A stretch of DNA of 64,000 nucleotides from Rebecca billardiae RCC1528 (GCA_965240325.2 OZ251230.1:1984001-2048000), one strand, 5' to 3'; numbered from the stretch's first letter, positions 20,793 through 51,487 are shown. Numbers and translations are program-made. The notes: a model not told the origin generated them from the sequence alone.

Positions 20793-23273
20793 ATGCTCGG
20801 GCTGTTAGGGCGGTTGGTGAGCACCAATGCGGCCGCATGCCCGCGTAGCGCGTATGGGCTGCGAGTGCGCATGCCGCTTTCGCCCGCACTCGCCTGTGCT
20901 GCGCAACGGGCGACGATGCATGCGGGCGGCCCATCCCGCCGGCCAGACAACAAGATGATCAACCGGCAGCTCACGGATGCACGTGACGCGAAACGCATCC
21001 TCGAAGTGTGCGCCGCTCATGGGCACGCGTTCAACATGGTGAACGAGGCCACCGCCATCTCTCGGCTGGGTCGCCATGCGCGCACGTTGCGCGGCCACGC
21101 GCTGCGCGCCGACGAGCGCTTCGGCGCCCTCCTCGCGCGCGTGGAGCGGCGGCTTGAGGGCAAGGCAGTCGACGGCTCGACGTATAGTGCCCGCGAAGTG
21201 GCTAATGTAGCGCACGGCCTGGCCAAGCTGCGGCCAACCAAGTGTGGTGCCGAGCGCGCATTCGGCGCGATCGCGCGGGAGGCCGAGGCGCGCGTGAGCG
21301 AGTTCAATGCGCAGGGGCTGGCCAACACGTCGTGGGCGTACGCCACCGCTGGCGTGGACGCACCCGCGCTGTATGGCGCAATCGCGCGGGAGGCCGAGGC
21401 GCGCGCGAGCGAGTTCAATGCGCAGGACATGGCCAACACGGCGTGGGCGTACGCCACAGCTGGCGTGGACGCACCCGCGCTGTATGGCGCGATCGCGCGG
21501 GAGGCTGTGGCGCGCGCGAGCGAGTTCAAGGCGCAGGGGCTGGCCAACACGGCGTGGGCGTACGCCACCGCGGGCGTGGACGCACCCGCGCTGTATGGCG
21601 CGATCGCGCGGGAGGCCGTGGCGCGCGCGAGCGAGTTCAATGCGCAGGGCATGGCCAACACGGCGTGGGCGTACGCCACCGCGGGCGTGGACGCACCCGC
21701 GCTGTATGGCGCGATCGCGCGGGAGGCCGAGGCGCGCGTGAGCGAGTTCAATGCGCAGGACATGGCCAACACGGCGTGGGCGTACGCCACCGCTGGCGTG
21801 CACGCACCCGCGCTGTATGGCGCGATCGCGCGGGAGGCCGAGGCGCGCGCGAGCGAGTTCAATGCGCAGGGGCTGGCCAACACGGCGTGGGCGTACGCCA
21901 ACGCGGGCGTGGACGCACCCGCGCTGTATGGCGCGATCGCGCGGGAGGCTGTGGCGCGCGCGAGCGAGTTCAAGGCGCAGGGGCTGGCCAACACGGCGTG
22001 GGCGTACGCCACCGCGGGCGTGGACGCACCCGCGCTGTATGGCGTGATCGCGCGGGAGGCAGAGGCGCGCGTGAGCGAGTTCAATGCGCAGGACATGGCC
22101 AACACGGCGTGGGCGTACGCCACAGCTGGCGTGGACGCACCCGCGCTGTATGGCGCGATCGCGCGGGAGGCCGAGGCGCGCGCGAGCGAGTTCGATACGC
22201 AGGGGCTGGCCAACACGGCGTGGGCGTACGCCACCGCTGGCGTGGACGCACCCGCGCTGTATGGCGCGATCGCGCGGGAGGCTGTGGCGCGCGCGAGCGA
22301 GTTCAAGGCGCAGAACCTGGCCAACACGGCGTGGGCGTACGCCACCGCTGGCGTGGACGCACCCGCGCTGTATGGCGCGATCGCGCGGGAGGCCGAGGCG
22401 CGCGTGAGCGAGTTCAATGCGCAGGACATGGCCAACACGGCGTGGGCGTACGCCACAGCTGGCGTGGACGCACCCGCGCTGTATGGCGCGATCGCGCGGG
22501 AGGCCGAGGCGCGCGCGAGCGAGTTCAATGCGCAGGGGCTGGCCAACACGGCGTGGGCGTACGCCACCGCTGGCGTGGACGCACCCGCGCTGTATGGCGT
22601 GATCGCGCGGGAGGCTGTGGCGCGCGCGAGCGAGTTCAATGCGCAGAACCTGGCCAACACGGCGTGGGCGTATGCGACGGCTGCCCAGCACATGGAGCAC
22701 CTGCAGCTCGTGCTGTCCCTGTGCGAGCGATGCCTTGCTGCGCCCGGGCTGCAGGCGCAACTCAGAGTGGAGGGCCATGTCAATGTGGCGCAGGCACTGC
22801 TCACGCTGCACGTTGATCCACGCCTGCCCGTTGGCACAGCACGCACACGTGTGGAGACGATGCTGGTGCAGTGCCTGGGTCACCAGCTGCTTCGTGACGC
22901 AGCTTCACAGGCGGTGCGCCCGTCGTCATCGCAGCGGGCGCTCTCTCGCGCGCTCGCAGAGTGCGGCTGGGCGCACGAGGAGGAGGTGCGCATCGGCGAG
23001 GGCGGGCTGCTCGTCGTGGACATGGTGTGCACCGCGTCCAAGGTGGCTGTGGAGTACGATGGGCCGTCCCACTTTGTGACCGACCCGTGGACGGGCGCGC
23101 AGCGGCTCAACGGGCCCAGCCAGTGGAAGACGCGCGTGCTCGAATCGCTGGGCTGGCAGGTCGTGCGCGTGAGCTACAAGGACTACAGCGGCGGTGCATC
23201 TGGCTCAGCCTCGAAGAATGCACGCTTTGCAGAAGGGCTGGCTCGAGACTTGGTGTCGTTGTTCTCGTCCTGA
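20793..23273 (+). CDS. 37-aa-repeat (HPR/OPR-like) RAP-domain protein, copy 1 (826 aa, 12.5 repeats)
   Basis: Repeat [33 protein letters not shown](V/E)AR(A/V) at 21297-22682; RAP motif [11 protein letters not shown]...[15 protein letters not shown]. Confidence 0.9.
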   Translation: MLGLLGRLVSTNAAACPRSAYGLRVRMPLSPALACAAQRATMHAGGPSRRPDNKMINRQLTDARDAKRILEVCAAHGHAFNMVNEATAISRLGRHARTLRGHALRADERFGALLARVERRLEGKAVDGSTYSAREVANVAHGLAKLRPTKCGAERAFGAIAREAEARVSEFNAQGLANTSWAYATAGVDAPALYGAIAREAEARASEFNAQDMANTAWAYATAGVDAPALYGAIAREAVARASEFKAQGLANTAWAYATAGVDAPALYGAIAREAVARASEFNAQGMANTAWAYATAGVDAPALYGAIAREAEARVSEFNAQDMANTAWAYATAGVHAPALYGAIAREAEARASEFNAQGLANTAWAYANAGVDAPALYGAIAREAVARASEFKAQGLANTAWAYATAGVDAPALYGVIAREAEARVSEFNAQDMANTAWAYATAGVDAPALYGAIAREAEARASEFDTQGLANTAWAYATAGVDAPALYGAIAREAVARASEFKAQNLANTAWAYATAGVDAPALYGAIAREAEARVSEFNAQDMANTAWAYATAGVDAPALYGAIAREAEARASEFNAQGLANTAWAYATAGVDAPALYGVIAREAVARASEFNAQNLANTAWAYATAAQHMEHLQLVLSLCERCLAAPGLQAQLRVEGHVNVAQALLTLHVDPRLPVGTARTRVETMLVQCLGHQLLRDAASQAVRPSSSQRALSRALAECGWAHEEEVRIGEGGLLVVDMVCTASKVAVEYDGPSHFVTDPWTGAQRLNGPSQWKTRVLESLGWQVVRVSYKDYSGGASGSASKNARFAEGLARDLVSLFSS

Positions 23274-24221
23274 AGCGGGAATACAGCCGCCCCGTCGACC
23301 CGTCGCGGTCACTGGCACTGCGTCGGTGCCTGACCCGGCGCCGCCGCCCTGCCGCCGCCTGCCCGCCTGGGACGACGACCACTGCGGTCCGACGTCGGAC
23401 TCCGCAACGGTCCGCCGAGCCGCAGCAGCAGTGAGCAGAAGTCCTGCTGCGTGTGACGCTACTGATCCCCGCCCTGAAGCAATTATCTATAAATATAAGC
23501 GCGCGCATCATCATCATCATCATCATCGTCTCGGTTGTAGCCTCATGCTGCTGTCTGCTGACGACCGAGCTGCCCCTGCGTGCTGATGCGCGCTGAAAGT
23601 CGTATATAGCGCGCGTCACTCATCAGTCATCAGCGCGCTTATTCATCACTACTACTACGATGACTCATTAGCAGCGGCGGCGGCGATTGCGCTGATGATG
23701 CCGCAGCATCCTGCTGCGAATATAAGTCACGACAGTCGCGCTGCTGTATGCGACTGCTACTACTTATGCTGACGAGTCGTGCTTATTATCAGTGCGCGCG
23801 CGGCCAACCGCCCCGTGGCGGCCCACCGACGGCGGTCAGGGATAGTCTGGGCGCGCCAGCACTGAGGGCATCACTGCCCACCCATATCCGCCGAGCCCCG
23901 CCCCTCCGCGGGCGCTGGAAGCGCCGAGTGCCCGCCGCCCTCGCGGTGCCCGCGCTCGAGCCGCCCGAGGGTCCCGCGTTGGCCCGTTGCCGCCCTCCTC
24001 GTCTGCTGGCATCTCCACCAGCTTCTCAAGCTCGCCCAGGTCGTAGCCTCTGACGGTCGCCGAGCGGTCTGCTGCGCGGCAGGCGCGGCCGCCTTGGGAT
24101 CGAAGCCTGCGCGCGCCCAGCGCCCCCCGCCGCCCCGCCCCGCGCGCGCCGCTGCGCCGCTCGGCTCCGCCGGCTGCCAACGAACGGCACGGGACGGATG
24201 GCCGCTGCGCCGGGCTGGCAG

Positions 24222-24449
24222 ATCACCATCTACGCGGCCGTGACCGGCTCCGTCTTCCACGTCATCCTGGCGGACGTGCTGTACAACGCGGCGCACCTGC
24301 TGCTGCTGCTGTACAAGGTGAGCTTCGTCGAGATGAGGAAGATCGCGGCGCTCGCGCGGGAGGAGCGGGCGGCGCTGGCGGCGCACGCGCCGGCCGACGC
24401 GCCGACGACGGTGCCGCGGGCGTCGCACGATGAGCGCTATAGTTATTAG
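24222..24449 (+). pseudogene. Orphan duplicate of the MATE-like terminal exon
   Basis: Near-identical to 20095-20322, preceded by part of intron 2 only. Confidence 0.8.
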
Positions 24450-24883
24450 CAGCAGCAGCAGAGATATTCTGTAATGACGCGCGCGGGTCATCTTAAATAA
24501 GCCTGCGCGGGCAGGCTTACTGCCTCCGCGGGGCGCTGCCTGCCCGAGCGCCGCCGCCACCTGACTTTAGCGGTAGGCCGCGGCGCCGCCGAGCCCGACG
24601 GTACGACCAGGCCCAGGGCGGGGCCCGCCGCCACGCACTCGCGAGCCGCTCCCTCGGCGTCATCGCTCAGCAGCGCGCCCGCTTCTTCGAGCGCAGCGCG
24701 CACGTGCGGCGCGAGCCGCGGCAGCAGGCGCACCTGCACGCGTGCAGCGCGTTCGGCTTGGCGACGGTCGGACCGATTGGCCGCCATCGTGCCGATGACG
24801 ACCGGTGGGTTCGAGCCCGCGTGGCGCAGGCACGTGAGGCTGGTGTGTCTCACACGCGGCGTCACGGCGCACGTGCACAAGGA

Positions 24884-27364
24884 ATGCTCGGGCTGTTAGG
24901 GCGGTTGGTGAGCACCAGTGCGGCCGCATGCCCGCGTAGCGCGTATGGGCTGCGAGTGCGCATGCCGCTTTCGCCCGCACTCGCCTGTGCTGCGCAACGG
25001 GCGACGATGCATGCGGGCGGCCCATCCCGCCGGCTAGACAACAAGATGATCAACCGGCAGCTCACGGATGCACGTGACGCGAAACGCATCCTCGAAGTGT
25101 GCGCCGCGCATGGGCACACGTTCGACAAGGTGAACGAGGCCACCGCCATCTCTCGGCTGGGCCGCCATGCGCGCACGTTGCGCGGCCACGCGCTGCGTGC
25201 CGACGAGCGCTTCGGCGCCCTCCTCGCGCGCGTGGAGCGGCGGCTTGAGGGCAAGGCAGTCGACGGCTCGACGTATAGTGCCCGCGAAGTGGCTAATGTA
25301 GCGCACGGCCTGGCCAAGCTGCGGCCAACCAAGTGTGGTGCCGAGCGCGCATTCGGCGCGATCGCGCGGGAGGCCGAGGCGCGCGTGAGCGAGTTCAATG
25401 CGCAGGGGCTGGCCAACACGTCGTGGGCGTACGCCACCGCTGGCGTGGACGCACCCGCGCTGTATGGCGCAATCGCGCGGGAGGCTGTGGAGCGCGCGAG
25501 CGAGTTCAATGCGCAGAACCTGGCCAACACGGCGTGGGCGTACGCCACCGCTGGCGTGGACGCACCCGCGCTGTATGGCGCGATCGCGCGGGAGGCTGTG
25601 GCGCGCGCGAGCGAGTTCAATGCGCAGGCGCTGGCCAACACGGCGTGGGCGTACGCCACCGCGGGCGTGGACGCGCCCGCGCTGTATGGCGCGATCGCGC
25701 GGGAGGCCGAGGCGCGCGCGAGCGAGTTCAAGGCGCAGAACCTGGCCAACACGGCGTGGGCGTACGCCACAGCTGGCGTGGACGCACCCGCGCTGTATGG
25801 CGCGATCGCGCGGGAGGCTGTGGCGCGCGCGAGCGAGTTCAAGGCGCAGAACCTGGCCAACACGGCGTGGGCGTACGCCACAGCTGGCGCGGACGCGCCC
25901 GCGCTGTATGGCGCGATCGCGCGGGAGGCCGAGGCGCGCGTGGGCGAGTTCAAGGCGCAGGAGCTGGCCAACACGGCGTGGGCGTACGCCACAGCTGGCG
26001 TGGACGCACCCGCGCTGTATGGCGCGATCGCGCGGGAGGCTGTGGCGCGCGCGAGCGAGTTCAAGGCGCAGGAGCTGGCCAGCACGGCGTGGGCGTACGC
26101 CACCGCTGGCGTGGACGCACCCGCGCTGTATGGCGCGATCGCGCGGGAGGCTGTGGCGCGCGCGAGCGAGTTCAATGCGCAGAACCTGGCCAACACGGCG
26201 TGGGCGTACGCCACCGCTGGCGTGGACGCACCCGCGCTGTATGGCGCGATCGCGCGGGAGGCTGTGGCGCGCGCGAGCGAGTTCAATGCGCAGAACCTGG
26301 CCAACACGGCGTGGGCGTACGCCACAGCGGGCGTGGACGCACCCGCGCTGTATGGCGCGATCGCGCGGGAGGCCGAGGCGCGCGCGAGCGAGTTCAATGC
26401 GCAGGGGCTGGCCAACACGGCGTGGGCGTACGCCACAGCTGGCATGGACGCACCCGCGCTGTATGGCGCAATCGCGCGGGAGGCTGTGGCGCGCGCGAGC
26501 GAGTTCAAGGCGCAGAACCTGGCCAACACGGCGTGGGCGTACGCCACCGCTGGCGTGGACGCACCCGCGCTGTATGGCGCGATCGCGCGGGAGGCCGAGG
26601 CGCGCGCGAGCGAGTTCAATGCGCAGAACCTGGCCAACACGGCGTGGGCGTACGCCACAGCTGGCGTGGACGCACCCGCGCTGTATGGCGTGATCGCGCG
26701 GGAGGCTGTGGCGCGCGCGAGCGAGTTCAATGCGCAGAACCTGGCCAACACGGCGTGGGCGTATGCGACTGCTGCCCAGCACATGGAGCACCTGCAGCTC
26801 GTGCTGTCCTTGTGCGAGCGGCTCCTTGCTGCGCCTGGGCTGCAGGCGCAACTCGGAGTGGAGGACCATGTCAATGTGGCGCAGGCACTGCTCACGCTGC
26901 ACGTCGATCCACGCCTGCCCGTTGGCACAGCACGCACACGTGTGGAGACGATGCTGGTGCAGTGCCTGGGTCACCAGCTGCTTCGTGACGCAGCTTCACA
27001 GGCGGTGCGCCCGTCGTCATCGCAGCGGGCGCTCTCTCGCGCGCTCGCAGAGTGCGGCTGGGCGCACGAGGAGGAGGTGCGCATCGGCGAGGGCGGGCTG
27101 CTCGTCGTGGACATGGTGTGCACCGCGTCCAAGGTGGCTGTGGAGTACGATGGGCCGTCCCACTTTGTGACCGACCCGTGGACGGGCGCGCAGCGGCTCA
27201 ACGGGCCCAGCCAGTGGAAGACGCGCGTGCTCGAATCGCTGGGCTGGCAGGTCGTGCGCGTGAGCTACAAGGACTACAGCGGCGGTGCATCTGGCTCAGC
27301 CTCGAAGAATGCACGCTTTGCAGAAGGGCTGGCTCGAGACTTGGTGTCGTTGTTCTCGTCCTGA
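24884..27364 (+). CDS. 37-aa-repeat RAP-domain protein, copy 2 (826 aa, 12.5 repeats)
   Basis: Paralogue of copy 1 at +4091; repeats at 25388-26773. Confidence 0.9.
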   Translation: MLGLLGRLVSTSAAACPRSAYGLRVRMPLSPALACAAQRATMHAGGPSRRLDNKMINRQLTDARDAKRILEVCAAHGHTFDKVNEATAISRLGRHARTLRGHALRADERFGALLARVERRLEGKAVDGSTYSAREVANVAHGLAKLRPTKCGAERAFGAIAREAEARVSEFNAQGLANTSWAYATAGVDAPALYGAIAREAVERASEFNAQNLANTAWAYATAGVDAPALYGAIAREAVARASEFNAQALANTAWAYATAGVDAPALYGAIAREAEARASEFKAQNLANTAWAYATAGVDAPALYGAIAREAVARASEFKAQNLANTAWAYATAGADAPALYGAIAREAEARVGEFKAQELANTAWAYATAGVDAPALYGAIAREAVARASEFKAQELASTAWAYATAGVDAPALYGAIAREAVARASEFNAQNLANTAWAYATAGVDAPALYGAIAREAVARASEFNAQNLANTAWAYATAGVDAPALYGAIAREAEARASEFNAQGLANTAWAYATAGMDAPALYGAIAREAVARASEFKAQNLANTAWAYATAGVDAPALYGAIAREAEARASEFNAQNLANTAWAYATAGVDAPALYGVIAREAVARASEFNAQNLANTAWAYATAAQHMEHLQLVLSLCERLLAAPGLQAQLGVEDHVNVAQALLTLHVDPRLPVGTARTRVETMLVQCLGHQLLRDAASQAVRPSSSQRALSRALAECGWAHEEEVRIGEGGLLVVDMVCTASKVAVEYDGPSHFVTDPWTGAQRLNGPSQWKTRVLESLGWQVVRVSYKDYSGGASGSASKNARFAEGLARDLVSLFSS

Positions 27365-29009: not shown

Positions 29010-31157
29010 ATGCTCGGGCTGTTAGGGCGGTTGGTGAGCACCAGTGCGGCCGCATGCCCGCGTAGCGCGTATGGGCTGCGAGTGCGCATGCCGCTTTCGC
29101 CCGCACTCGCCTGTGCTGCGCAACGGGCGACGATGCATGCGGGCGGCCCATCCCGCCGGCCAGACAACAAGATGATCAACCGGCAGCTCACGGATGCACG
29201 TGACGCGAAACGCATCCTCGAAGTGTGCGCCGCGCATGGGCACGCGTTCAACATGGTGAACGAGGCCACCGCCATCTCTCGGCTGGGTCGCCATGCGCGC
29301 ACGTTGCGCGGCCACGCGCTGCGCGCCGACAAGCGCCTCGGCGCCCTCCTCGCGCGCGTGGAGCGGCGGCTTGAGGGCAAGGCAGTCGACGGCTCGACGT
29401 ATAGTGCCCGCGAAGTGGCTAACGTAGCGCACGGCCTGGCCAAGCTGCGGCCAACTAAATGTGGTGCCGAGCGCGCATTCGGCGCGATCGCGCGGGAGGC
29501 CGAGGCGCGCGTGAGCGAGTTCGATGCGCAGGCGCTGGCCAACACGGCGTGGGCGTACGCCACCGCTGGCGTGGACGCACCCGCGCTGTATGGCGCGATC
29601 GCGCGGGAGGCTGTGGCGCGCGCGAGCGAGTTCAAGGCGCAGGGGCTGGCCAACACGGCGTGGGCGTACGCCACAGCTGGCGTGGACGCACCCGCGCTGT
29701 ATGGCGCGATCGCGCGGGAGGCCGAGGCGCGCGCGAGCGAGTTCAAGGCGCAGGGGCTGGCCAACACGGCATGGGCGTACGCCACGGCTGGCGTGGACGC
29801 ACCCTTGCTGTATGGCGCGATCGCGCGGGAGGCCGAGGCGCGCGTGAGCGACTTCAATGCGCAGGACATGGCCAACACGGCGTGGGCGTATGCCACCGCT
29901 GGCGTGGACGCACCCGCGCTGTATGGCGCGATCGCGCGGGAGGCCGAGGTGCGCGCGAGCGAGTTCAAGGCGCAGGAGCTGGCGAACACGGCGTGGGCGT
30001 ACGCCACGGCTGGCGTGGACGCACCCGCGCTGTATGGCGCGATCGCGCGGGAGGCTGTGGCGCGCGTGAGCGAGTTCAAGGCGCAGGACATGGCCAACAC
30101 GGCGTGGGCGTACGCCACCGCTGGCGTGGACGCACCCGCGCTGTATGGCACGATCGCGCGGGAGGCCGAGGTGCGCGCGAGCGAGTTCAAGGCGCAGGAG
30201 CTGGCCAACACGGCGTGGGCGTACGCCACCGCTGGCGTGGACGCACCCGCGCTGTATGGCGCGATCGCGCGGGAGGCCGAGGCGCGCGCGAGCGAGTTCA
30301 ATGCGCAGAACATGGCCAACACGGCATGGGCGTACGCCACCGCTGGCGTGGACGCACCCGCGCTGTATGGCGCGATCGCACGGGAGGCCGAGGCGCGCGC
30401 GGGCGAGTTCAATGCGCAGGCCATGGCCAACACGGCGTGGGCGTACGCCACAGCTGGCGTGGACGCACCCGCGCTGTATGGCGCGATCGCGCGGGAGGCC
30501 GAGGCGCGCGCGAGCGAGTTCAATGCGCAGGCCATGGCCAACACGGCGTGGGCGTATGCGACTGCTGCCCAGCACATGGAGCATCTGCACCTCGTGCTGT
30601 CCCTGTGCGAGCGATGCCTTGCTGCGCCTGGGCTGCAGGCGCAACTCGGAATGGAGGGCCATGCCAATGTGGCGCAGGCACTGCTCACGCTGCACGTCGA
30701 TCCACGCCTGCCCGTTGGCACAGCACGCACACGTGTGGAGTCCATGCTGGCGCAGTGCCTCGGTAGCCAGCTGCTTCGTGACGCAGCTTCTCAGGCGGTG
30801 CGCCCGTCGTCATCGCAGCGAGCGCTCTCTCGCGCGCTCGCAGAGTGCGGCTGGGCGCACGAGGAGGAGGTGCGCATCGGCGAGGGCGGGCTGCTCGTCG
30901 TGGACATGGCGTGCACCGCGTCCAAGGTGGCTGTGGAGTACGATGGGCCGTCCCACTTTGTGACCGACCCGTGGACGGGCGCGCAGCGGCTCAACGGGCC
31001 CAGCCAGTGGAAGACGCGCGTGCTCGAATCGCTGGGCTGGCGGGTCGTGCGCGTGAGCTACAAGGACTACAGCGGCGGTGCATCTGGCTCAGCCTCGAAG
31101 AATGAACGCTTTGCAGAAGGGCTGGCTCGCGACTTGGTGTCGTTGTTCTCGTCCTGA
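29010..31157 (+). CDS. 37-aa-repeat RAP-domain protein, copy 3 (715 aa, 9.5 repeats)
   Basis: Repeats at 29514-30566; RAP motif intact. Confidence 0.9.
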   Translation: MLGLLGRLVSTSAAACPRSAYGLRVRMPLSPALACAAQRATMHAGGPSRRPDNKMINRQLTDARDAKRILEVCAAHGHAFNMVNEATAISRLGRHARTLRGHALRADKRLGALLARVERRLEGKAVDGSTYSAREVANVAHGLAKLRPTKCGAERAFGAIAREAEARVSEFDAQALANTAWAYATAGVDAPALYGAIAREAVARASEFKAQGLANTAWAYATAGVDAPALYGAIAREAEARASEFKAQGLANTAWAYATAGVDAPLLYGAIAREAEARVSDFNAQDMANTAWAYATAGVDAPALYGAIAREAEVRASEFKAQELANTAWAYATAGVDAPALYGAIAREAVARVSEFKAQDMANTAWAYATAGVDAPALYGTIAREAEVRASEFKAQELANTAWAYATAGVDAPALYGAIAREAEARASEFNAQNMANTAWAYATAGVDAPALYGAIAREAEARAGEFNAQAMANTAWAYATAGVDAPALYGAIAREAEARASEFNAQAMANTAWAYATAAQHMEHLHLVLSLCERCLAAPGLQAQLGMEGHANVAQALLTLHVDPRLPVGTARTRVESMLAQCLGSQLLRDAASQAVRPSSSQRALSRALAECGWAHEEEVRIGEGGLLVVDMACTASKVAVEYDGPSHFVTDPWTGAQRLNGPSQWKTRVLESLGWRVVRVSYKDYSGGASGSASKNERFAEGLARDLVSLFSS

Positions 31158-31370
31158 AGCGGGAATACGGCCGCCCCGTCGACCCGTCGCGGTCACTGGC
31201 ACTGCGTCGGTGCCTGACCCGGCGCCGCCGCCCTGCCGCCGCCTGCCCGCCTGGGACGACGGCCACTGCGGTCCGACGTCGGACTCCGCAACGGCCCGCC
31301 GAGCCGCAGCTGCAGCAGCCCTGCTGAGTGTGACGCTACTGATCCCCGCCCTGGAGCAATTATTTAAATA

Positions 31371-33205
31371 TGACCGCGTTCCGCGGTCCTTCCGTAGAAC
31401 CAACGTAGTTAGGGGCCCGCGATGCAACCTCCGTCGGCTGCTGTCGATCAGTCTGACACTCTGACTGACATGGCGGGCCGAGGACTCAGCCGCGGGCCGC
31501 GCGGCGGGAAGCGCGGCCGCCGGGGCGGCGCGCGCGCGCAGGGCGAGAGGCGCCGCGCGGCGCGGGCCGGCGCGTGCGGGCGTGCGGGCGCACCTGCTTG
31601 AGGTGTTCGCGCTGCGCCATGCGCTCGACGACGGGCCGCTGGTCGCTCAGCCGGCGCGCTTCGTGCCGGCAGAGCGAGAGCGCGCGCCACTCGGCCAGCG
31701 GGCACTGCTGCCCTGCGGCCCCGGTGCGCTGCGCAGCCGCGCACCGATCGCCAGAGGCGAGACCGAGCGGAGCTCGGAGTGGAACGAGGCGAGCGACGCG
31801 TCGCGCCTGCCGCCGCGCGTGCGCGCCTGCTCCACCGCGCCGCGCCGTGCTCGCCCGCCGCCTCCTCGTCCGCCACGTCGGCCTCGAAGCCACGCAGCGG
31901 CGGCGGCCAGCGCGGCAGGCCGTGACAATCGGCAGCCCGTGGCCGTGCGTGCTCGCCGAGTTGCTGCTGCTGCACCTCCGGCGCGGTCGACGACCGAGTT
32001 GAGGAGGAGCTCGCGCTCGGCGTCGAGGAGCGAGCTCGCGAGCTCGAGCTCGCCCTTCAGCCGCACTACTAGCTCCGGGCGCATCCGGCTCATCTCCGCT
32101 GCGGCGTGCCGTCGCGGCACGCTCCCGTCCTCATTCATTCCTCAAGCGACGAGCTCGCGTAGTGCTCCGGACTCGGCTCGCCCTTCGCTCCTCCTCGAGC
32201 GACGAACGCGCCTGCGGGTAGGTTGTTGGGCGCGCGCCGACTCGGCGTGACTCGGCCACGCGGCCCGGCGAGACGACAGACCGGTGGGCGCGCTGGGGCG
32301 CTCGGTGAGAGCGGAGTGCGAGGGCCGGGTGGGCGCGCTCGGTGAGAGCGGAGTGCGAGGGCCGGACGAGACGGAGTAGACGCGGGGCCTGCGAGGCGAC
32401 AGGCGCGCTCGGGGAGAGCAGAGTGCGAGGGCGAGAGGCAGCGGCCGGCCGGCCCCCGCCACCACCTCGCGCACCGCGGCGTACTGCGGCGGCACGCGCA
32501 CGCACGCGGTCCGCCCGGTCCGAGTCAAGGGCTCCAGTTCCACGCGTCGCGGTCGCGCCGGCACGTCACCGGCGCGAGTCGTCAAGGGCCTTGCCCCATA
32601 TAGTGCAATTTCGTCTGCGTGCTGTATATTCGTATCACGAATACCCTACTATAGGGGTACGGAGTGATCATCTTTTCATCTGCAGTGCGCCCTCTACTGT
32701 AGCTAGTGGCTTCCGCGGGAACCATGTCCATTTACGACCATGCACGTTCAACCGTATCGTCGGAAGATTGAACGGGAACCCCCTTGGTAGAATACCCTGC
32801 TACTGTAGGACCCCCGTGCACATGCACTTTAAAAAAACACGTCCGGCCCTGGGTCCGGTTGGTCCCGGGCTGGCGACCAAGTTTTGTTCCGTATGAATAT
32901 TTACAACAAATCGCAGCTAGATATTCGTTCACTACCCAGATATACTGACAAAGGCACGCCCAGGCTCACGTCCGTCCATCGACATATGCGGAATGGCGTG
33001 GGCGCGCTTATTTCGTCAACCGCGTAGTTGCTAATGCAGAGCACTATGGGCCAACGTACCCCTCGAAAAAGCGAAAACTCACCCTCCAACACCCCTCAGA
33101 ATCGTCCCCCGTCCCCTTTTCTTTGATCAAAAGATCTTTTTGACAACGTAGTGAGGCCCCCCGGCGGGGCTCCACGCTACGCGCTCCGCCCTACACCGCG
33201 GGCCA
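31371..33205. mobile_element. 1.8-kb insertion in the array spacer carrying a degenerate intron-containing gene fragment (- strand, ~31480-32590)
   Basis: Absent from the other spacers at the AAATA^TAAGCGCGCG site. Ends TG...CA flanked by TA; subterminal CAACGTAGT direct repeats and a 3' hairpin. Confidence 0.55.
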
Positions 33206-34585: not shown

Positions 34586-37500
34586 ATGCTCGGGCTGTTA
34601 GGGCGGTTGGTGAGCACCAATGCGGCCGCATGCCCGCGTAGCGCGTATGGGCTGCGAGTGCGCATGCCGCTTTCGCCCGCACTCGCCTGTGCTGCGCAAC
34701 GGGCGACGATGCATGCGGGCGGCCCATCCCGCCGGCCAGACAACAAGATGATCAACCGGCAGCTCACAGATGCACGTGACGCGAAACGCATCCTCGAAGT
34801 GTGCGCCGCGCATGGGCACACGTTCGACAAGGTGAACGAGGCCACCGCCATCTCTCGGCTGGGCCGCCATGCGCGCACGTTGCGCGGCCACGCGCTGCGT
34901 GCCGACGAGCGCTTCGGCGCCCTCCTCGCGCGCGTGGAGCGGCGGCTTGAGGGCAAGGCAGTCGACGGCTCGACGTATAGTGCCCGCGAAGTGGCTAATG
35001 TAGCGCACGGCCTGGCCAAGCTGCGGCCAACCAAGTTTGGTGCCGAGCGCGCATTCGGCGCGATCGCGCGGGAGGCTGTGGCGCGCACGAGCGAGTTCAA
35101 TGCGCAGAACCTGGCCAACACGGCGTGGGCGTACGCCACCGCTGGCGTGGACGCACCCGCGCTGTATGGCGCGATCGCGCGGGAGGCTGTGGCGCGCGCG
35201 AGCGAGTTCAATGCGCAGGAGCTGGCCAACACGGCGTGGGCGTACGCCACCGCTGGCGTGGACGCACCCGCGCTGTATGGCGCGATCGCGCGGGAGGCTG
35301 TGGCGCGCGCGAGCGAGTTCAAGGCGCAGAACCTGGCCAACACGGCGTGGGCGTACGCCACCGCTGGCGTGGACGCACCCGCGCTGTATGGCGCGATCGC
35401 GCGGGAGGCTGTGGCGCGCGCGAGCGAGTTCAATGCGCAGGAGCTGGCCAACACGGCGTGGGCGTACGCCACCGCTGGCGTGGACGCACCCTTGCTGTAT
35501 GGCGCGATCGCGCGGGAGGCTGTGGCGCGCGCGAGCGAGTTCAAGGCGCAGAACCTGGCCAACACGGCGTGGGCGTACGCCACCGCTGGCGTGGACGCAC
35601 CCACGCTGTATGGCGTGATCGCGCGGGAGGCTGCGGCGCGCGCGAGCGAGTTCAATGCGCAGAACCTGGCCAACACGGCGTGGGCGTACGCCACAGCGGG
35701 CGTGGACGCACCCGCGCTGTATGGCGCGATCGCGCGGGAGGCCGAGGCGCGCGCAAGCGAGTTCAATGCGCAGGGGCTGGCCAACACGGCGTGGGCGTAC
35801 GCCACAGCGGGCGTGGACGCACCCGCGCTGTATGGCGCGATCGCGCGGGAGGCTGTGGCGCGCGCGAGCGAGTTCAAGGCGCAGAACCTGGCCAACTCGG
35901 CGTGGGCGTACGCCACCGCTGGCGTGGACGCACCCGCGCTGTATGGCGCGATCGCGCGGGAGGCTGTGGCGCGCGCGAGCGAGTTCAATGCGCAGAACCT
36001 GGCCAACACGGCGTGGGCGTACGCCACCGCTGGCGTGGACGCACCCGCGCTGTATGGCGCGATCGCGCGGGAGGCTGTGGCGCGCGCGAGCGAGTTCAAT
36101 GCGCAGGAGCTGGCCAACACGGCGTGGGCGTACGCCACCGCTGGCGTGGACGCACCCGCGCTGTATGGCGCGATCGCGCGGGAGGCTGTGGCGCGCGCGA
36201 GCGAGTTCAAGGCGCAGAACCTGGCCAACACGGCGTGGGCGTACGCCACCGCTGGCGTGGACGCACCCACGCTGTATGGCGTGATCGCGCGGGAGGCTGC
36301 GGCGCGCGCGAGCGAGTTCAATGCGCAGAACCTGGCCAACACGGCGTGGGCGTACGCCACAGCGGGCGTGGACGCACCCGCGCTGTATGGCGCGATCGCG
36401 CGGGAGGCCGAGGCGCGCGCAAGCGAGTTCAATGCGCAGGGGCTGGCCAACACGGCGTGGGCGTACGCCACAGCGGGCGTGGACGCACCCGCGCTGTATG
36501 GCGCGATCGCGCGGGAGGCTGTGGCGCGCGCGAGCGAGTTCAAGGCGCAGAACCTGGCCAACTCGGCGTGGGCGTACGCCACCGCTGGCGTGGACGCACC
36601 CGCGCTGTATGGCGCGATCGCGCGGGAGGCTGTGGCGCGCGCGAGCGAGTTCAATGCGCAGAACCTGGCCAACACGGCGTGGGCGTACGCCACCGCTGGC
36701 GTGGACGCACCCTTGCTGTATGGCGCGATCGCGCGGGAGGCTGTGGCGCGCGCGAGCGAGTTCAATGCGCAGAACCTGGCCAACACGGCGTGGGCGTACG
36801 CCACAGCGGGCGTGGACGCACCCGCGCTGTATGGCGCGATCGCGCGGGAGGCTGTGGCGCGCGCGAGCGAGTTCAATGCGCAGGACATGGCCAACACGGC
36901 GTGGGCGTACGCCACCGCTGGCGTGGACGCACCCGCGCTGTATGGCGCGATCGCGCGGGAGGCTGTGGCGCGCGCGAGCGAGTTCAAGGCGCAGGGGCTG
37001 GCTAACACGGCGTGGGCGTACGCCACCGCTGGCGTGGACGCACCCGCGCTGTATGGCGCGATCGCGCGGGAGGCCGTGGCGCGCGCGAGCGAGTTCAAGG
37101 CGCAGAACCTGGCCAACACGGCGTGGGCGTACGCCACAGCTGGCGTGGACGCACCCGCGCTGTATGGCGCGATCGCGCGGGAGGCCGAGGCGCGCGTGAG
37201 CGAGTTCAATGCGCAGGAGCTGGCCAACACGGCGTGGGCGTACGCCACCGCTGGCGTGGACGCACCCGCGCTGTATGGCGCGATCGCGCGGGAGGCCGAG
37301 GCGCGCGCGAGCGAGTTCAATGCGCAGAACCTGGCCAACACGGCGTGGGCGTACGCCACAGCGGGCGTGGACGCACCCGCGCTGTATGGCGCGATCGCGC
37401 GGGAGGCTGTGGCGCGCTCGGGCGAGTTCAATGCGCAGAACCTGGCCAACACGGCGTGGGCGTATGCGACGGCTGCCCAGCACATGGAGCACCTGCAGCT

Positions 37501-38065
37501 CGTGCTGTCCCTGTGCGAGCGATGCCTTGCTGCGCCTGGGCTGCAGGCGCAACTCAGAGTGGAGGACCATGCCAATGTGGCGCAGGCACTGCTCACGCTG
37601 CACGTCGATCCACGCCTGCCCGTTGGCACAGCACGCACACGTGTGGAGTCCATGCTGGCGCAGTGCCTCGGTAGCCAGCTGCTTCGTGACGCAGCTTCAC
37701 AGGCGGTGCGCCCGTCGTCATCGCAGCGGGCGCTCTCTCGCGCGCTCGCAGAGTGCGGCTGGGCGCACGAGGAGGAGGTGCGCATCGGCGAGGGCGGGCT
37801 GCTCGTCGTGGACATGGCGTGCACCGCGTCCAAGGTGGTTGTGGAGTACGATGGGCCGTCCCACTTTGTGACGGACCCGTGGACGGGCGCGCAGCGGCTC
37901 AACGGGCCCAGCCAGTGGAAGACGCGCGTGCTCGAATCGCTGGGCTGGCGGGTCGTGCGCGTGAGCTACAAGGACTACAGCGGCGGTGCATCTGGCTCAG
38001 CCTCGAAGAATGCACGCTTTGCAGAAGGGCTGGCTCGCGACTTGGTGTCGTTGTTCTCGTCCTGA
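34586..38065 (+). CDS. 37-aa-repeat RAP-domain protein, copy 4 (1159 aa, 21.5 repeats)
   Basis: Repeats at 35090-37474; RAP motif intact. Confidence 0.9.
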   Translation: MLGLLGRLVSTNAAACPRSAYGLRVRMPLSPALACAAQRATMHAGGPSRRPDNKMINRQLTDARDAKRILEVCAAHGHTFDKVNEATAISRLGRHARTLRGHALRADERFGALLARVERRLEGKAVDGSTYSAREVANVAHGLAKLRPTKFGAERAFGAIAREAVARTSEFNAQNLANTAWAYATAGVDAPALYGAIAREAVARASEFNAQELANTAWAYATAGVDAPALYGAIAREAVARASEFKAQNLANTAWAYATAGVDAPALYGAIAREAVARASEFNAQELANTAWAYATAGVDAPLLYGAIAREAVARASEFKAQNLANTAWAYATAGVDAPTLYGVIAREAAARASEFNAQNLANTAWAYATAGVDAPALYGAIAREAEARASEFNAQGLANTAWAYATAGVDAPALYGAIAREAVARASEFKAQNLANSAWAYATAGVDAPALYGAIAREAVARASEFNAQNLANTAWAYATAGVDAPALYGAIAREAVARASEFNAQELANTAWAYATAGVDAPALYGAIAREAVARASEFKAQNLANTAWAYATAGVDAPTLYGVIAREAAARASEFNAQNLANTAWAYATAGVDAPALYGAIAREAEARASEFNAQGLANTAWAYATAGVDAPALYGAIAREAVARASEFKAQNLANSAWAYATAGVDAPALYGAIAREAVARASEFNAQNLANTAWAYATAGVDAPLLYGAIAREAVARASEFNAQNLANTAWAYATAGVDAPALYGAIAREAVARASEFNAQDMANTAWAYATAGVDAPALYGAIAREAVARASEFKAQGLANTAWAYATAGVDAPALYGAIAREAVARASEFKAQNLANTAWAYATAGVDAPALYGAIAREAEARVSEFNAQELANTAWAYATAGVDAPALYGAIAREAEARASEFNAQNLANTAWAYATAGVDAPALYGAIAREAVARSGEFNAQNLANTAWAYATAAQHMEHLQLVLSLCERCLAAPGLQAQLRVEDHANVAQALLTLHVDPRLPVGTARTRVESMLAQCLGSQLLRDAASQAVRPSSSQRALSRALAECGWAHEEEVRIGEGGLLVVDMACTASKVVVEYDGPSHFVTDPWTGAQRLNGPSQWKTRVLESLGWRVVRVSYKDYSGGASGSASKNARFAEGLARDLVSLFSS

Positions 38066-39260: not shown

Positions 39261-39693
39261 CAGCAGCAGCAGAGATATTCTGTAAAGACGCGCGCGGGTC
39301 ATCTTAAATAAGCCTGCGCGGGCAGGCTTACTGCCTCCGCGGGGCGCTGCCTGCCCGAGCGCCGCCGCCACCTGACTTCAGCGGTAGGCCGCGGCGCCGC
39401 CGAGCCCGACGGTACGACCAGGCCCAGGGCGGGGCCCGCCGCCACGCACTCGCGAGCCGCTCCCTCGGCGTCATCGCTCAGCAGCGCGCCCGCTTCTTCG
39501 AGCGCAGCGCGCACGTGCGGTGCGAGCCGCGGCAGCAGGCGCACCTGCACGCGTGCAGCGCGTTCGGCTTGGCGACGGTCGGACCGATTGGCCGCCATCG
39601 TGCCGATGACGACCGGTGGGTTCGAGCCCGCGTGGCGCAGGCACGTGAGGCTGGTGTGTCTCACACGCGGCGTCACGGCGCACGTGCACAAGG

Positions 39694-42285
39694 ATGCTCG
39701 GGCTGTTAGGGCGGTTGGTGAGCACCAATGCGGCCGCATGCCCGCGTAGCGCGTATGGGCTGCGAGTGCGCATGCCGCTTTCGCCCGCACTCGCCTGTGC
39801 TGCGCAACGGGCGACGATGCATGCGGGCGGCCCATCCCGCCGGCCAGACAACAAGATGATCAACCGGCAGCTCACGGATGCACGTGACGCGAAGCGCATC
39901 CTCGAAGTGTGCGCCGCGCATGGGCACACGTTCGACAAGGTGAACGAGGCCACCGCCATCTCTCGGCTGGGCCGCCATGCGCGCACGTTGTGCTTCCACG
40001 CGCTGCGAGCCGACGAGCGCTTCGACGCCCTCCTCGCGCGCGTGGAGCGGCGGCTTGAGGGCAAGGCAGTCGACGGCTCGACGTATAGTGCCCGCGAAGT
40101 GGCTAATGTAGCGCACGGCCTGGCCAAGCTGCGGCCAACCAAGTTTGGTGCCGAGCGCGCATTCGGCGCGATCGCGCGGGCGGCTGTGGCGCGCGCGAGC
40201 GAGTTCAATGCGCAGGCGCTGGCCAACACGGCGTGGGCGTACGCCACCGCTGGCGTGGACGCACCCGCGCTGTATGGCGCGATCGCGCGGGAGGCTGTGG
40301 CGCGCGCGAGCGAGTTCAAGGCGCAGGAGCTGGCCAACACGGCGTGGGCGTACGCCACCGCTGGCGTGGACGCACCCTTGCTGTATGGCGCGATCGCGCG
40401 GGAGGCTGTGGCGCGCGCGAGCGAGTTCAAGGCGCAGAACCTGGCCAACACGGCGTGGGCGTACGCCACCGCTGGCGTGGACGCACCCGCGCTGTATGGC
40501 GCGATCGCGCGGGAGGCTGTGGCGCGCGCGAGCGAGTTCAAGGCGCAGGAGCTGGCCAACACGGCGTGGGCGTACGCCACCGCTGGCGTGGACGCACCCG
40601 CGCTGTATGGCGCGATCGCGCGGGAGGCTGTGGCGCGCGCGAGCGAGTTCAATGCGCAGAACCTGGCCAACACGGCGTGGGCGTACGCCACAGCGGGCGT
40701 GGACGCACCCGCGCTGTATGGCGCGATCGCGCGGGAGGCTGTGGCGCGCGCGAGCGAGTTCAAGGCGCAGAACCTGGCCAACACGGCGTGGGCGTACGCC
40801 ACAGCGGGCGTGGACGCACCCGCGCTGTATGGCGCGATCGCGCGGGAGGCCGAGGCGCGCGTGGGCGAGTTCAAGCCGCAGGAGCTGGCCAACACGGCGT
40901 GGGCGTACGCCACCGCTGGCGTGGACGCACCCGCGCTGTATGGCGCGATCGCGCGGGAGGCCGAGGCGCGCGCGAGCGAGTTCAAGGCGCAGGACATGGC
41001 CAACACGGCGTGGGCGTACGCCACCGCTGGCGTGGACGCACCCGCGCTGTATGGCGCGATCGCGCGGGAGGCTGTGGCGCGCGCGAGCGAGTTCAAGGCG
41101 CAGAACCTGGCCAACACGGCGTGGGCGTACGCCACCGCTGGCGTGGACGCACCCGCGCTGTATGGCGCGATCGCGCGGGAGGCCGAGGCGCGCGCGAGCG
41201 AGTTCAATGCGCAGAACCTGGCCAACACGGCGTGGGCGTACGCCACAGCTGGCGTGGACGCACCCGCGCTGTATGGCGCAATCGCGCGGGAGGCTGTGGA
41301 GCGCGCGAGCGAGTTCAATGCGCAGGGGCTGGCCAACACGGCGTGGGCGTACGCCACCGCTGGCGTGGACGCACCCGCGCTGTATGGCGCGATCGCGCGG
41401 GAGGCCGAGGCGCGCGCGAGCGAGTTCAAGGCGCAGAACCTGGCCAACACGGCGTGGGCGTACGCCACAGCTGGCATGGACGCACCCGCGCTGTATGGCG
41501 CAATCGCGCGGGAGGCTGTGGCGCGCGCGAGCGAGTTCAAGGCGCAGAACCTGGCCAACACGGCGTGGGCGTACGCCACCGCTGGCGTGGACGCACCCGC
41601 GCTGTATGGCGCGATCGCGCGGGAGGCCGAGGCGCGCGCGAGCGAGTTCAATGCGCAGAACCTGGCCAACACGGCGTGGGCGTACGCGACGGCTGCCCAG
41701 CACATGGAGCACCTGCAGCTCGTGCTGTCCCTGTGCGAGCGATGCCTTGCTGCGCCTGGGCTGCAGGCGCAACTCAGAGTGGAGGACCATGCCAATGTGG
41801 CGCAGGCACTGCTCACGCTGCACGTCGATCCACGCCTGCCCGTTGGCACAGCACGCACACGTGTGGAGACGATGCTGGCGCAGTGCCTCGGTAGCCAGCT
41901 GCTTCGTGACGCAGCTTCACAGGCGGTGCGCCCGTCGTCATCGCAGCGGGCGCTCTCTCGTGCGCTCGCAGAGTGCGGCTGGTCGCACGAAGAGGAGGTG
42001 CGCATCGGCGAGGGCGGGCTGCTCGTCGTGGACATGGTGTGCACGGCGTCCAAGGTGGCTGTGGAGTACGATGGGCCGTCCCACTTTGTGACCGACCCGT
42101 GGACGGGCGCGCAGCGACTCAACGGGCCCAGCCAGTGGAAGACGCGCGTGCTCGAATCGCTGGGCTGGCGGGTCGTGCGCGTGAGCTACAAGGACTACAG
42201 CGGCGGTGCATCTGGCTCAGCCTCGAAGAATGCACGCTTTGCAGAAGGGCTGGCTCGCGACTTGGTGTCGTTGTTCTCGTCCTGA
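39694..42285 (+). CDS. 37-aa-repeat RAP-domain protein, copy 5 (863 aa, 13.5 repeats)
   Basis: Repeats at 40198-41694; RAP motif intact. Confidence 0.9.

Positions 42286-51432: not shown

Positions 51433-51487
<55 letters not shown>

Follow-up and report, generated by a model that had tools for sequence, protein, structure and literature searches.

A young tandem cluster of HPR/OPR-RAP genes with homogenised repeat arrays in Rebecca billardiae

Gene cluster architecture

Five genes for helical-repeat proteins that end in a RAP domain (HPR-RAP genes, g1 to g5) are found in a 64,000-nucleotide stretch of DNA from Rebecca billardiae RCC1528 (GCA_965240325.2 OZ251230.1:1984001-2048000), which constitutes the window analysed here. 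All five are intact and lie on the + strand, and with ORF starts set at the first ATG they encode proteins of 826, 826, 715, 1159 and 863 amino acids. Each consists of an N-terminal region, an array of full repeat modules closed by one terminal module, and a RAP-containing C-terminus. In g1 (20793..23273), the array has 12 full modules (21264-22706) and is followed by the C-terminus at 22707-23273. The g2 gene (24884..27364) has the same 12 + 1 organisation (array 25355-26797; C-terminus 26798-27364). The shortest member, g3 (29010..31157), carries 9 + 1 modules (29481-30590; C-terminus 30591-31157), and the longest, g4 (34586..38065), carries 21 + 1 (35057-37498; C-terminus 37499-38065). The last gene, g5 (39694..42285), has 13 + 1 modules (40165-41718; C-terminus 41719-42285). 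There are no internal stops in these ORFs, and all domains of each gene share a single continuous frame.

An N-terminus of 157 residues and a C-terminus of 188 residues are common to g1-g5. The corresponding coding flanks (471 nt and 567 nt, respectively) are 96.4-99.2% identical among copies, and among the five C-termini variation is limited to 13 of 188 residues. These uninterrupted ORFs and closely similar flanks bear out a preliminary description of the locus as five intact, intronless paralogues with nearly the same termini. The duplication extends to intergenic DNA. The spacer at 23274..24883 has copies at 27365-29009, 31158-34585 and 38066-39693 with 92-98% identity, such that a gene and its spacer form a tandem unit of approximately 4.1 kb. 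An additional 1.8 kb or so of DNA (31380..33205) is confined to the spacer between g3 and g4, and no gene, Pfam match or terminal repeats were recognised within it. No mobile-element features were found around g1-g5. The cluster is a young tandem duplication of the 4.1-kb unit.

Repeat arrays and their recombination

Tandem Repeats Finder (TRF) reports five arrays with a period of 111 bp, containing 12.8, 12.8, 9.8, 21.8 and 13.8 copies with 93-95% matches and no indels. Read in register, they comprise 12, 12, 9, 21 and 13 full modules of 37 amino acids in g1-g5, each array being followed by one truncated module. This gives 13, 13, 10, 22 and 14 modules per array and 72 in total. The terminal module retains 29 of 37 residues, or about 0.8 of a unit. 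An earlier count of 72 near-identical modules of 111 bp is therefore correct, but the terminal unit is longer than the 'half-repeat' it was taken to be.

Several observations show that unequal recombination has reshaped these arrays, as was originally proposed. The same modules recur in different genes of the cluster, and the g1 array has a higher-order period of 333 bp. The g4 array contains an exact 553-bp direct duplication (35494..36712, + strand), in which 35494-36046 is repeated at 36160-36712 with an offset of 666 bp, or six modules. This duplication reflects either recent unequal recombination or an assembly duplication. Homogenised arrays are not peculiar to this locus, since less extreme examples are also present in many marine protists.

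Near-identical 111-bp modules and 4.1-kb units with 97-98% identity are difficult to assemble. Together with the exact duplication in g4, this raises the possibility that assembly errors account for the lengths of the arrays or for the tandem of five, or that the genes are unexpressed duplicates turning into pseudogenes. We judge such an explanation very improbable. All five frames are intact across 2.1-3.5 kb, each copy has many private substitutions in its flanks, spacers and modules, and the window contains no N characters or gaps. In addition, flank dN/dS values of 0.45-0.56, at dS of 0.03-0.04 between copies, indicate from sequence comparison that the copies are under selection. One public DNA run yielded short fragments that are 90-95% similar.

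Protein family and predicted fold

The repeats match the Pfam model DUF1601, which describes a 37-residue repeat, with E values from 1.6e-16 to 2.1e-22 (60-79 bits; cut-off 25). The motif F.xQ.L.N..WA.A..G had already been read as the helical hairpin of HPR/OPR proteins, and these matches confirm that reading. A word search returned 539 homologues, and an exhaustive HMMER search returned 8049 cluster representatives, 963 of them with E<=1e-30. Homologues bear RESC6, RESC8, FAST_1 and DUF1601 domains.

An AF2 model of the g3 protein (pLDDT 86.9, pTM 0.82) consists of a solenoid spanning residues 53-594 and an alpha/beta domain spanning residues 601-715. Within the array, where pLDDT is 93-98, each module is modelled as two helices. 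The alpha-solenoid anticipated for these proteins is thus predicted with confidence. Foldseek matches to the model include RESC6, the mitoribosomal HPR/OPR/RAP proteins of T. gondii and Chlamydomonas, and FASTKD4, while full-length matches include FASTKD1-5, plant RAP, Tbc2 and Raa3. The Polytomella ATP synthase subunit ASA2 is also among the structural matches. Because the Pfam results, the confident model and the fold matches agree, the proteins are assigned as HPR/OPR (FASTK-like) repeats joined to a RAP domain.

Members of the HPR family have RNA footprints (PMC6212722), and in OPR proteins single-stranded RNA lies in the inner groove (PMC8660880). The grooves of solved OPR-RNA structures are basic (PMC8660880). 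In contrast, the arrays described here are acidic, with net charges of -14 to -24 and pI values of 4.6-4.9, which counts against their being RNA readers.

RAP domain

The C-terminal domain was correctly identified as RAP in the preliminary description. Its Pfam scores (PF08373; 29.4-29.9 bits in the three copies scanned) exceed the gathering cut-off of 24.2, and it carries a full acidic/His/Lys set of the form D ... E-x-D-G-x-x-H ... K. In g3 numbering, this catalytic-type set consists of E620, D632, E643, D645, H649 and K668, all of which are conserved in the family and kept in all five copies. Neither of the two family alignments (A1 and A2) shows any change at E620, E643 or H649. At K668, A2 likewise shows no change and A1 retains the Lys in 50 of 51 sequences, and conservation in A2 reaches at least 90% for both D632 and D645. 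Asp-to-Glu spacings of 11 and 13 are both common in the RAP family.

Residues 601-715 of the g3 model form a mixed beta-sheet with helices on its flanks. Foldseek matches this region to the FAST1-FAST2-RAP portion of FASTKD4 (9gek) and to T. gondii RAP proteins, and a profile search with the C-terminus also matches T. gondii RAP protein chains (E 2e-9). Known relatives differ in activity. FASTKD5 cuts client RNAs in vitro (10.1101/2024.07.18.603998). Some members of the wider HPR/RAP family are structural or non-catalytic, examples being FASTKD4 (PMC11879112), mitoribosomal RAP/HPR proteins and ASA2.

Variable module positions

Variation between modules is concentrated at codons 8, 11, 15, 18 and 19. 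Position 18 has the highest entropy (2.04 bits; N/G/E/D/A) and is followed by 15, 8, 11 and 19, the remaining positions being nearly invariant. Non-synonymous diversity (pN) is 0.53 at codon 18 and 0.26 across the five hot codons, which were picked after inspection of the data, against an array-wide pS of 0.066. The other 32 codons have a pN/pS of 0.21. Concerted evolution breaks the assumptions behind standard dN/dS tests. Moreover, not all of the module variation need reflect site-specific selection, because part of it travels as linked haplotypes. For example, one haplotype is E8-V11-D18-M19, and D18 invariably occurs with M19.

The same positions vary in distantly related arrays. In three independent environmental arrays, the highest pN is again at codon 18 (0.51, 0.42 and 0.48, compared with pS of 0.25, 0.24 and 0.17). 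Approximately 70 independent arrays from other protists show the highest within-array variability at 18 (E/D/N/G/A) and 15 (N/K/T/S), with restricted alphabets. Among 52 homologues from the word search, position 18 is the most variable in 13 and within the top three in 27, and the variable-site result is reproduced in 22 representatives with mutual identity <=50%. The ratio of within-array to pooled entropy is highest at 18 (0.66) and 15 (0.62) and is 0.32-0.45 at other variable positions. These two sites also have the narrowest alphabets, their top five residues accounting for 92% and 89% of units, respectively. Variation at a few residues, resembling the repeat-variable diresidues (RVDs) of TAL effectors, is therefore evident in entropy and pN/pS at this locus and is repeated in other lineages.

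Variation at 15 and 18 might simply be tolerated at the surface if the proteins serve as parts of a mitoribosome or another organellar complex, or as protein-binding solenoids, with neither sequence-specific RNA reading nor catalysis. Several top fold matches are indeed structural subunits (the T. gondii and Chlamydomonas mitoribosomal HPR/OPR/RAP proteins and Polytomella ASA2), FASTKD4 is reported to be inactive (PMC11879112), and the array is acidic. However, such subunits are normally single-copy and conserved, whereas this cluster has five young paralogues that differ in array length and composition. Within each array, and across many lineages, positions 18 and 15 draw repeatedly on a restricted set of polar or small residues, which the ordinary surface positions 5, 8, 9 and 12 do not. 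Finally, no RAP catalytic-type residue is missing here, whereas the set is degenerate in the best-aligning T. gondii mitoribosomal RAP protein. On balance, a purely structural role seems rather unlikely.

Probable mitochondrial targeting

The first 52 codons, located at 20793..20948 (+ strand) in g1, are identical in all five genes. The peptide they encode contains seven Arg residues and has a net charge of +6, with its sole acidic residue at position 52. It lacks a hydrophobic core (peak 12-residue hydropathy 1.09), and residues 1-47 are disordered in the AF2 model. By its composition, this N-terminus looks like a mitochondrial presequence. A role in defence against invading nucleic acids had also been suggested, and the analysis of the locus gave no sign of one.

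Comparison with known systems

The OPR-RAP cluster of Chlamydomonas reinhardtii, cited in the preliminary description, is a genuine precedent (PMC8635915). According to the accounts in PMC8635915 and PMC13126933 of work by Boulouis et al. (2015), these NCL (NCC-like) genes form a nuclear cluster of young tandem paralogues with a central OPR/HPR-type helical array followed by a C-terminal RAP domain. NCL paralogues are described as destabilising chloroplast mRNAs (PMC8635915), with members gaining new organellar mRNA targets as the family evolves by gene diversification. The hallmark of tandem young OPR-RAP paralogues is present here as well, in the form of five roughly 4.1-kb units, with spacer identities of 92-98% and flank dS of 0.03-0.04. 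The NCL proteins of those accounts are green-algal and chloroplast-directed, with 7-12 repeats of 38-40 residues, whereas those studied here have 10-22 repeats of 37 residues per protein. The latter repeats are also far more uniform (93-95% DNA identity), and the presequence is mitochondrial-looking. No Chlamydomonas proteins occur among the named homologue matches. As Pavlovales sp. CCMP2436 and Chrysophaeum each carry a single-copy relative, the expansion is probably independent of NCL.

Human FASTK and FASTKD1-5 resemble the proteins over their full length in having a mitochondrial presequence (predicted here), HPR-type helices and a RAP/Vsr-like domain, and in vitro, FASTKD5 cuts specific mitochondrial pre-mRNAs (10.1101/2024.07.18.603998). 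However, the human proteins have few, highly degenerate repeats, share only 10-13% identity with those described here, and are not encoded in tandem gene clusters. Apicomplexan, chromerid and dinoflagellate HPR and RAP proteins (Hillebrand et al. 2018, PMC6212722; PMC11652630) share the 37-residue repeat and its core motif, often have an attached RAP domain, and function in organellar RNA (PMC6212722). Some of the strongest matches by fold and by sequence are to solved structures from the T. gondii mitoribosome (PMC11652630). These proteins have degenerate repeats, and many of them serve as structural components of ribosomes; the literature searched describes neither a recognition code nor homogenised arrays for them.

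Pentatricopeptide repeat (PPR) proteins read one nucleotide per repeat by means of the PPR code (Barkan et al. 2012, PMC3420917). They constitute a separate family with a 35-residue repeat, code positions 5 and 35, and repeats that are not near-identical as DNA. The plant Rf-like (RFL) PPR proteins are clustered, recombining organellar helical-repeat RNA binders with diversifying selection on nucleotide-specifying residues, and the cluster shares this organisation. Unlike the proteins described here, RFL proteins are not known to carry a fused nuclease domain.

The proteins also recall TAL effectors (TALEs), bacterial secreted DNA binders with 33-35-residue repeats and an RVD at positions 12/13, and their artificial nuclease fusions, TALENs. 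Common to both, as an analogy of organisation, are arrays whose almost identical helical hairpins vary at a couple of residues beside the inter-helix turn, a truncated last repeat, evolution by repeat recombination, and the coupling of a reader to a nuclease fold. TAL effector identity is rejected. No TAL-effector Pfam match was obtained, no TALE occurs among the fold matches, and the 37-residue repeat belongs to the HPR family. The designation 'natural TALEN' consequently holds only as an analogy.

A truly TALEN-like function would require the arrays to read organellar or nuclear DNA that the Vsr-like domain nicks or cuts, in recombination, copy-number control or selfish homing. The RAP fold has relatives among DNA endonucleases (Vsr, DUF559 and REase_MTES_1575), for which weak Pfam matches were obtained, and certain homologues are automatically annotated as very-short-patch repair endonucleases. 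TALE arrays are likewise acidic and nearly identical as DNA. Nevertheless, we consider DNA targeting improbable, as all characterised HPR, OPR, FASTK and RAP proteins act on RNA (PMC6212722, PMC8635915, PMC8660880, 10.1101/2024.07.18.603998), the repeats have no TALE homology, and the genes lack surrounding mobile-element features. Organellar RNA is the probable substrate, unlike that of TALEs.

Proposed function

The explanation we favour, with somewhat better than even confidence, is that a nuclear HPR/OPR-RAP gene has undergone a young tandem expansion to yield modular mitochondrial RNA readers, whose RAP domain cuts or holds RNA and whose arrays are diversified by recombination. By analogy, these proteins are most likely organellar RNA readers/cutters that diversify in the manner of the Chlamydomonas NCL or plant Rf-like PPR clusters. 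The Arg-rich presequence would direct import into mitochondria, where the solenoid would bind single-stranded organellar RNA in a modular fashion. Residue 18, which closely follows the Gln that is invariant in the F-x-x-Q-x-L-x-N-T-x-W-A motif, is predicted to sit in the opening turn of the second helix, and residue 15 to cap this helix. Jointly, the two residues may do most to specify the base that is read. The RAP domain, a putative Vsr-like PD-(D/E)xK fold with its D...E-x-D-G-x-x-H...K set intact, could then cut or hold the bound RNA. Unequal crossing-over and gene conversion among near-identical modules and the five copies would generate new arrays, and with them new RNA specificities.

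What is new at this locus is the concentration of module variation at codons 8, 11, 15, 18 and 19, with 18 and 15 recurring across protist arrays. Because the same residues vary in distant relatives, positions 18 and 15 are good candidates for the recognition code of the HPR/OPR family.

Organization of the gene cluster

Five tandem HPR-RAP genes lie on the + strand of the window, each a stop-free open reading frame (ORF) that runs from its first ATG: g1 at 20793-23273 (826 aa), g2 at 24884-27364 (826 aa), g3 at 29010-31157 (715 aa), g4 at 34586-38065 (1159 aa) and g5 at 39694-42285 (863 aa). In all five proteins, a 157-aa N-terminal part is followed by the repeat modules and then by a 188-aa C-terminal part. 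Tandem Repeats Finder places a single array with a 111-bp period in each gene (12.8, 12.8, 9.8, 21.8 and 13.8 copies from g1 to g5), with 93-95% matches and zero indels. These arrays hold 12, 12, 9, 21 and 13 full 37-aa modules, respectively, and each ends in one further terminal module. The total of 72 modules given in the preliminary description is recovered when units are counted in register; the terminal unit, described there as a half-repeat, retains the first 29 residues, or about four-fifths of a module.

Pfam domain matches are confined to the + frame of the cluster, and the long antisense and off-frame ORFs that cross it are by-products of the 70% GC repeat. Exact look-up of the g3 sequence in a public gene collection found no record. 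A search for public RNA runs yielded none. The only public DNA run listed contains matching contig fragments, 64-233 nt long and for the most part 90-95% similar, that represent another strain or a metagenome.

The gene directly upstream of the cluster, at 18660-20303 on the + strand, encodes a MatE-family transporter (27.4 bits versus a cut-off of 24.9). Also neighbouring the cluster is an uninterrupted ORF of 6522 aa at 43836-63404 on the - strand, in DNA of 80-84% GC. About 9 kb of this ORF (53978-62930) is a 12-nt repeat encoding (Ser/Val/Ala-Pro-Pro-Pro)n in the ORF frame, and its non-repeat part contains a REJ (polycystin-1-like) domain that scores 29.8 bits versus a cut-off of 25.

Family membership and predicted fold

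Pfam assigns the 37-aa repeat to DUF1601 (E down to 2e-22). The C-terminal RAP domain (PF08373) proposed from the sequence is found at 29.4-29.9 bits, versus a gathering score of 24.2, together with sub-threshold or borderline matches to DUF559 and REase_MTES_1575, two related families of endonucleases. A word-index search returned 539 homologues, with best identities of 46-55%, from Pelagophyceae sp. CCMP2097, Pavlovales sp. CCMP2436, Phaeocystis, Chrysotila, diatoms, Symbiodinium and many marine metagenomes. Precomputed domains in these homologues include RESC6, RESC8, FAST_1, DUF1601 and RAP. Exhaustive searching with HMMER gave 8049 cluster representatives, and 963 of these reach E<=1e-30; the best match is a 1699-aa RAP-domain protein from the pelagophyte Chrysophaeum taylorii.

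An AlphaFold2 model of g3, built from a 51-sequence alignment, is of high confidence, with a pLDDT of 86.9 and a pTM of 0.82. As expected from the repeat, residues 53-594 form a regular alpha-solenoid with two helices per module (array pLDDT 93-98). Residues 601-715 form an alpha/beta domain, and residues 1-47 are disordered. Foldseek matches to this model in the PDB are trypanosome RESC6, Polytomella ASA2, HPR/RAP proteins of the T. gondii mitoribosome, OPR proteins of the Chlamydomonas and Polytomella mitoribosomes, and the FAST1-FAST2-RAP module of human FASTKD4. Among reviewed AlphaFold models, the g3 model aligns over its own full length to FASTKD1-5, the plant chloroplast RAP protein, Tbc2 and Raa3. 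A profile of the C-terminal domain matches T. gondii RAP proteins (E 2e-9) and FASTKD4 (0.017). Taken together, the Pfam assignments, homologue domains, model and fold matches make it secure that the five products belong to the HPR/OPR-RAP (FASTK-like) family. The likeness to TALE proteins drawn in the preliminary description does not extend to descent, because the Pfam and fold matches rule out membership of, or any relationship to, the TAL effectors.

Protist homologues such as P0018, P0022, P0002 and P0028 carry arrays of this type with other C-terminal domains: FAD-dependent monooxygenase (PF01494), RRM (PF00076) or pseudouridine synthase (PF00849) with SAP. In a Chrysophaeum homologue, an N-terminal peptidase U32 domain is joined to the same array type. 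The HPR-type array seems to serve several effector domains as an all-purpose targeting module. Another homologue (P0075), of 585 aa, comprises nine 37-aa repeats that are semi-homogenised and ends in a RAP/MTES_1575-like region. It is encoded on a 22.9-kb contig with bacterial-looking neighbours, namely a PBP transpeptidase (FtsI-like), the RsmH methyltransferase and MraZ, and may be an HPR-RAP protein of eukaryotic type that a bacterium gained by horizontal transfer.

The RAP domain and the N-terminus

In a first whole-protein alignment, the window proteins have Val in a column that is Asp in 43 of 51 homologues, and their own Asp lies two residues further on. Loss of a catalytic Asp is nevertheless ruled out, because the family includes proteins with either of two Asp-Glu spacings. 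The Asp precedes the E-x-[DN]-G-x-x-H motif by 13 residues in 55 of 139 homologues and by 11 residues in 47, while 10 have none. Local realignment of the C-terminal region matches D632 (g3 numbering) with Asp in at least 90% of the sequences. In the same realignment D645 is at least 90% conserved, and S600, E620, G626, E643, G646, H649 and K668 are invariant.

The full conserved RAP residue set is intact in all five copies; in the mitoribosomal RAP protein of T. gondii that matches best, the Glu and the His are missing. The literature on related domains is divided, in that FASTKD5 cleaves its client RNAs in vitro (10.1101/2024.07.18.603998), whereas the Vsr-like pocket of FASTKD4 is inactive (PMC11879112). 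With a complete residue set and such mixed precedent, an active nuclease in the RAP domains of the cluster is plausible.

The first 52 residues of the five proteins include seven Arg, and residue 52 is their sole acidic one. Hydropathy over 12 residues peaks at 1.09 in the N-terminus, far under the level of a signal-peptide core. Algae with a secondary plastid require an ER signal peptide for plastid import. This N-terminus, being Arg-rich, nearly free of acidic residues, non-hydrophobic and disordered, and having no signal-peptide core, looks like a mitochondrial presequence.

Variation among modules

Of the 37 module positions, 27 are invariant or deviate in at most two of the 67 full modules; R5, R10, Q17 and N21 are among the conserved residues. 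Variation is greatest at position 18 (N29 G15 E11 D8 A4; 2.04 bits) and is also found at positions 15 (N36 K29 D2), 8 (V37 E28 A2), 11 (A55 V11 T1) and 19 (L56 M11). Over the five codons 8, 11, 15, 18 and 19, pN is 0.26, and codon 18 alone reaches 0.53, compared with an array-wide pS of 0.066. The remaining 32 codons have a pN of 0.0145 and a pN/pS of 0.21.

Residues 15 and 18 associate almost freely, since NN, KN, NG, KE, ND, KG, NA, NE and KD pairs are all found, and the strings of these pairs differ among all five arrays. Some of the variation is linked. D18 invariably occurs with M19 and frequently also with E8 and V11, so part of the pattern reflects a few old module types. In the g3 model, residue 15 is the final loop residue, or cap, before helix 2 of the module and residue 18 lies in the first turn of that helix; by secondary-structure position, the two adjoin near the inter-helix turn. 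This placement recalls the RVD loop of TALEs and the specificity residues of PUF and PPR proteins.

Many homologues also carry semi-homogenised arrays, with a within-protein mean repeat identity of 0.5-0.87 and 82% matches in their DNA arrays. For 52 homologues from the word search, position 18 heads the ranking of within-array variability in 13 cases and is one of the top three sites in 27, compared with chance expectations of about 1.4 and 4.2, and E, D, G, N and A account for 93% of units there. Position 18 again ranks first in a second set of 22 homologues, found without the word index and at most 50% identical in pairwise comparison (top in 7, top three in 11).

Entropy measures from 67 arrays (542 units) separate positions 15 and 18 from the rest. 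Within-array entropy is high at 18 (1.80 bits) and 15 (1.49 bits), the top values in combination with the highest within/pooled entropy ratio. This ratio is 0.66 and 0.62 at these positions versus 0.32-0.45 at the other variable ones. The five commonest residues cover 92% of units at 18 and 89% at 15, but only 60-74% at positions 5, 8, 9 and 12. A small alphabet reused within every array is the signature expected of specificity residues, and positions 5, 8, 9 and 12 behave instead like drifting surface residues. In three independent environmental arrays, codon 18 has the highest pN (0.51, 0.42 and 0.48, versus synonymous diversities of 0.25, 0.24 and 0.17); the array of a further homologue (P0001) was left out here, as indels put it out of register.

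Overall, the prominence of positions 15 and 18 recurs across about 70 arrays from pelagophytes, haptophytes, diatoms, dinoflagellates and Plasmodiophora, in homologue sets that are not fully independent and with a repeat HMM built from the window's own modules. A RAP-domain protein (P0174) of the plant pathogen Plasmodiophora brassicae has eight repeats with a mean identity of 0.77, and homogenised HPR arrays are therefore present in Rhizaria too.

Duplication and recombination

The cluster consists of a unit of about 4.1 kb, comprising a gene and a spacer of about 1.6 kb, that is present five times. Spacers between copies are 92-98% identical. Roughly the final 800 bp, on the promoter side of the spacer, are also found ahead of g1, and the first 190 bp plus one more piece follow g5. 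About 1.8 kb of additional DNA (31380-33205), present in the g3-g4 spacer only, holds a short internal 31-nt repeat family. Scans of the spacers and this insertion for genes, terminal repeats and Pfam domains gave only spurious GC-rich ORFs and no transposon ends. No tandem clusters were found near the six homologues with readable contigs.

The coding flanks of the five copies are 96.4-99.2% identical. Pooled dS is 0.030 for the N-terminal and 0.041 for the C-terminal flank, and the corresponding dN/dS values are 0.56 and 0.45. These values indicate that the gene copies are recent and under some purifying selection. The module pS of 0.066 exceeds the dS between gene copies, so the module types predate the gene duplications and were later redistributed. 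Some 111-bp modules are identical between genes (for example, module 10 of g1, module 3 of g4 and modules 3 and 9 of g5). In the g4 array a 553-bp stretch recurs without change six modules further on, and the g1 array has a three-module higher-order period (identity 0.951 at offset 333 versus about 0.925 at other offsets). Judged from these sequence patterns, the common modules, the g4 duplication and the g1 period appear to be marks of unequal crossing-over and gene conversion. Duplication during assembly is a possible alternative source of these patterns.

Proposed function and implications

HPR, OPR and FASTK proteins, which occur in organisms as far apart as humans and malaria parasites, form one of the large families of organellar RNA regulators. 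The proteins of the cluster are probably mitochondrial modular readers of single-stranded RNA that derive their specificity chiefly from residues 18 and 15 of every module. The coupled RAP domain would cut or anchor the RNA, and new arrays would arise in the cluster by recombination. Two observations count against an RNA reader: several relatives among the Foldseek matches are purely structural, and the repeat arrays are acidic (net charge -14 to -24), whereas the solved OPR grooves are basic (PMC8660880).

A stronger form of this proposal is possible but rather doubtful. Here, one module would read one nucleotide through a compact code at residue 18 (E/D/N/G/A), tuned by residue 15 (N/K/T/S). 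Homogenised HPR-RAP arrays would then be naturally programmable RNA cutters that the cell reprograms by repeat recombination, either in a nuclear-mitochondrial arms race or for adaptive control of organellar transcripts. If true, this would provide the first code for the large HPR/OPR family and a designer scaffold with its own built-in nuclease.

HPR/OPR-RAP proteins, their organellar RNA roles and the precedent of clustered OPR-RAP genes are already known. The literature searched gives no recognition code for HPR, OPR or FASTK repeats and does not mention HPR/OPR arrays as uniform as these or a wide occurrence of homogenised HPR arrays in marine protists. Nor does it report that position 15 and the residue directly following the invariant Gln are repeatedly hypervariable. 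The codes of TALEs and, in part, of PPR proteins became readable from natural arrays that are constant except at a few residues, and this locus is the most extreme such array among the examples found here.

Plant Rf-like PPR clusters are one of the two closest functional precedents. The other is the Chlamydomonas NCL cluster of OPR-RAP genes, whose members have gained new chloroplast mRNA targets, which they destabilise (PMC8635915). The locus described here is a haptophyte counterpart to both, which are known sources of fast-diversifying nuclear factors for organellar transcripts. Its practical value is as a route towards an HPR/OPR recognition code, since the recurrent variability at positions 15 and 18 turns the question of how these proteins choose their RNAs into a testable one.
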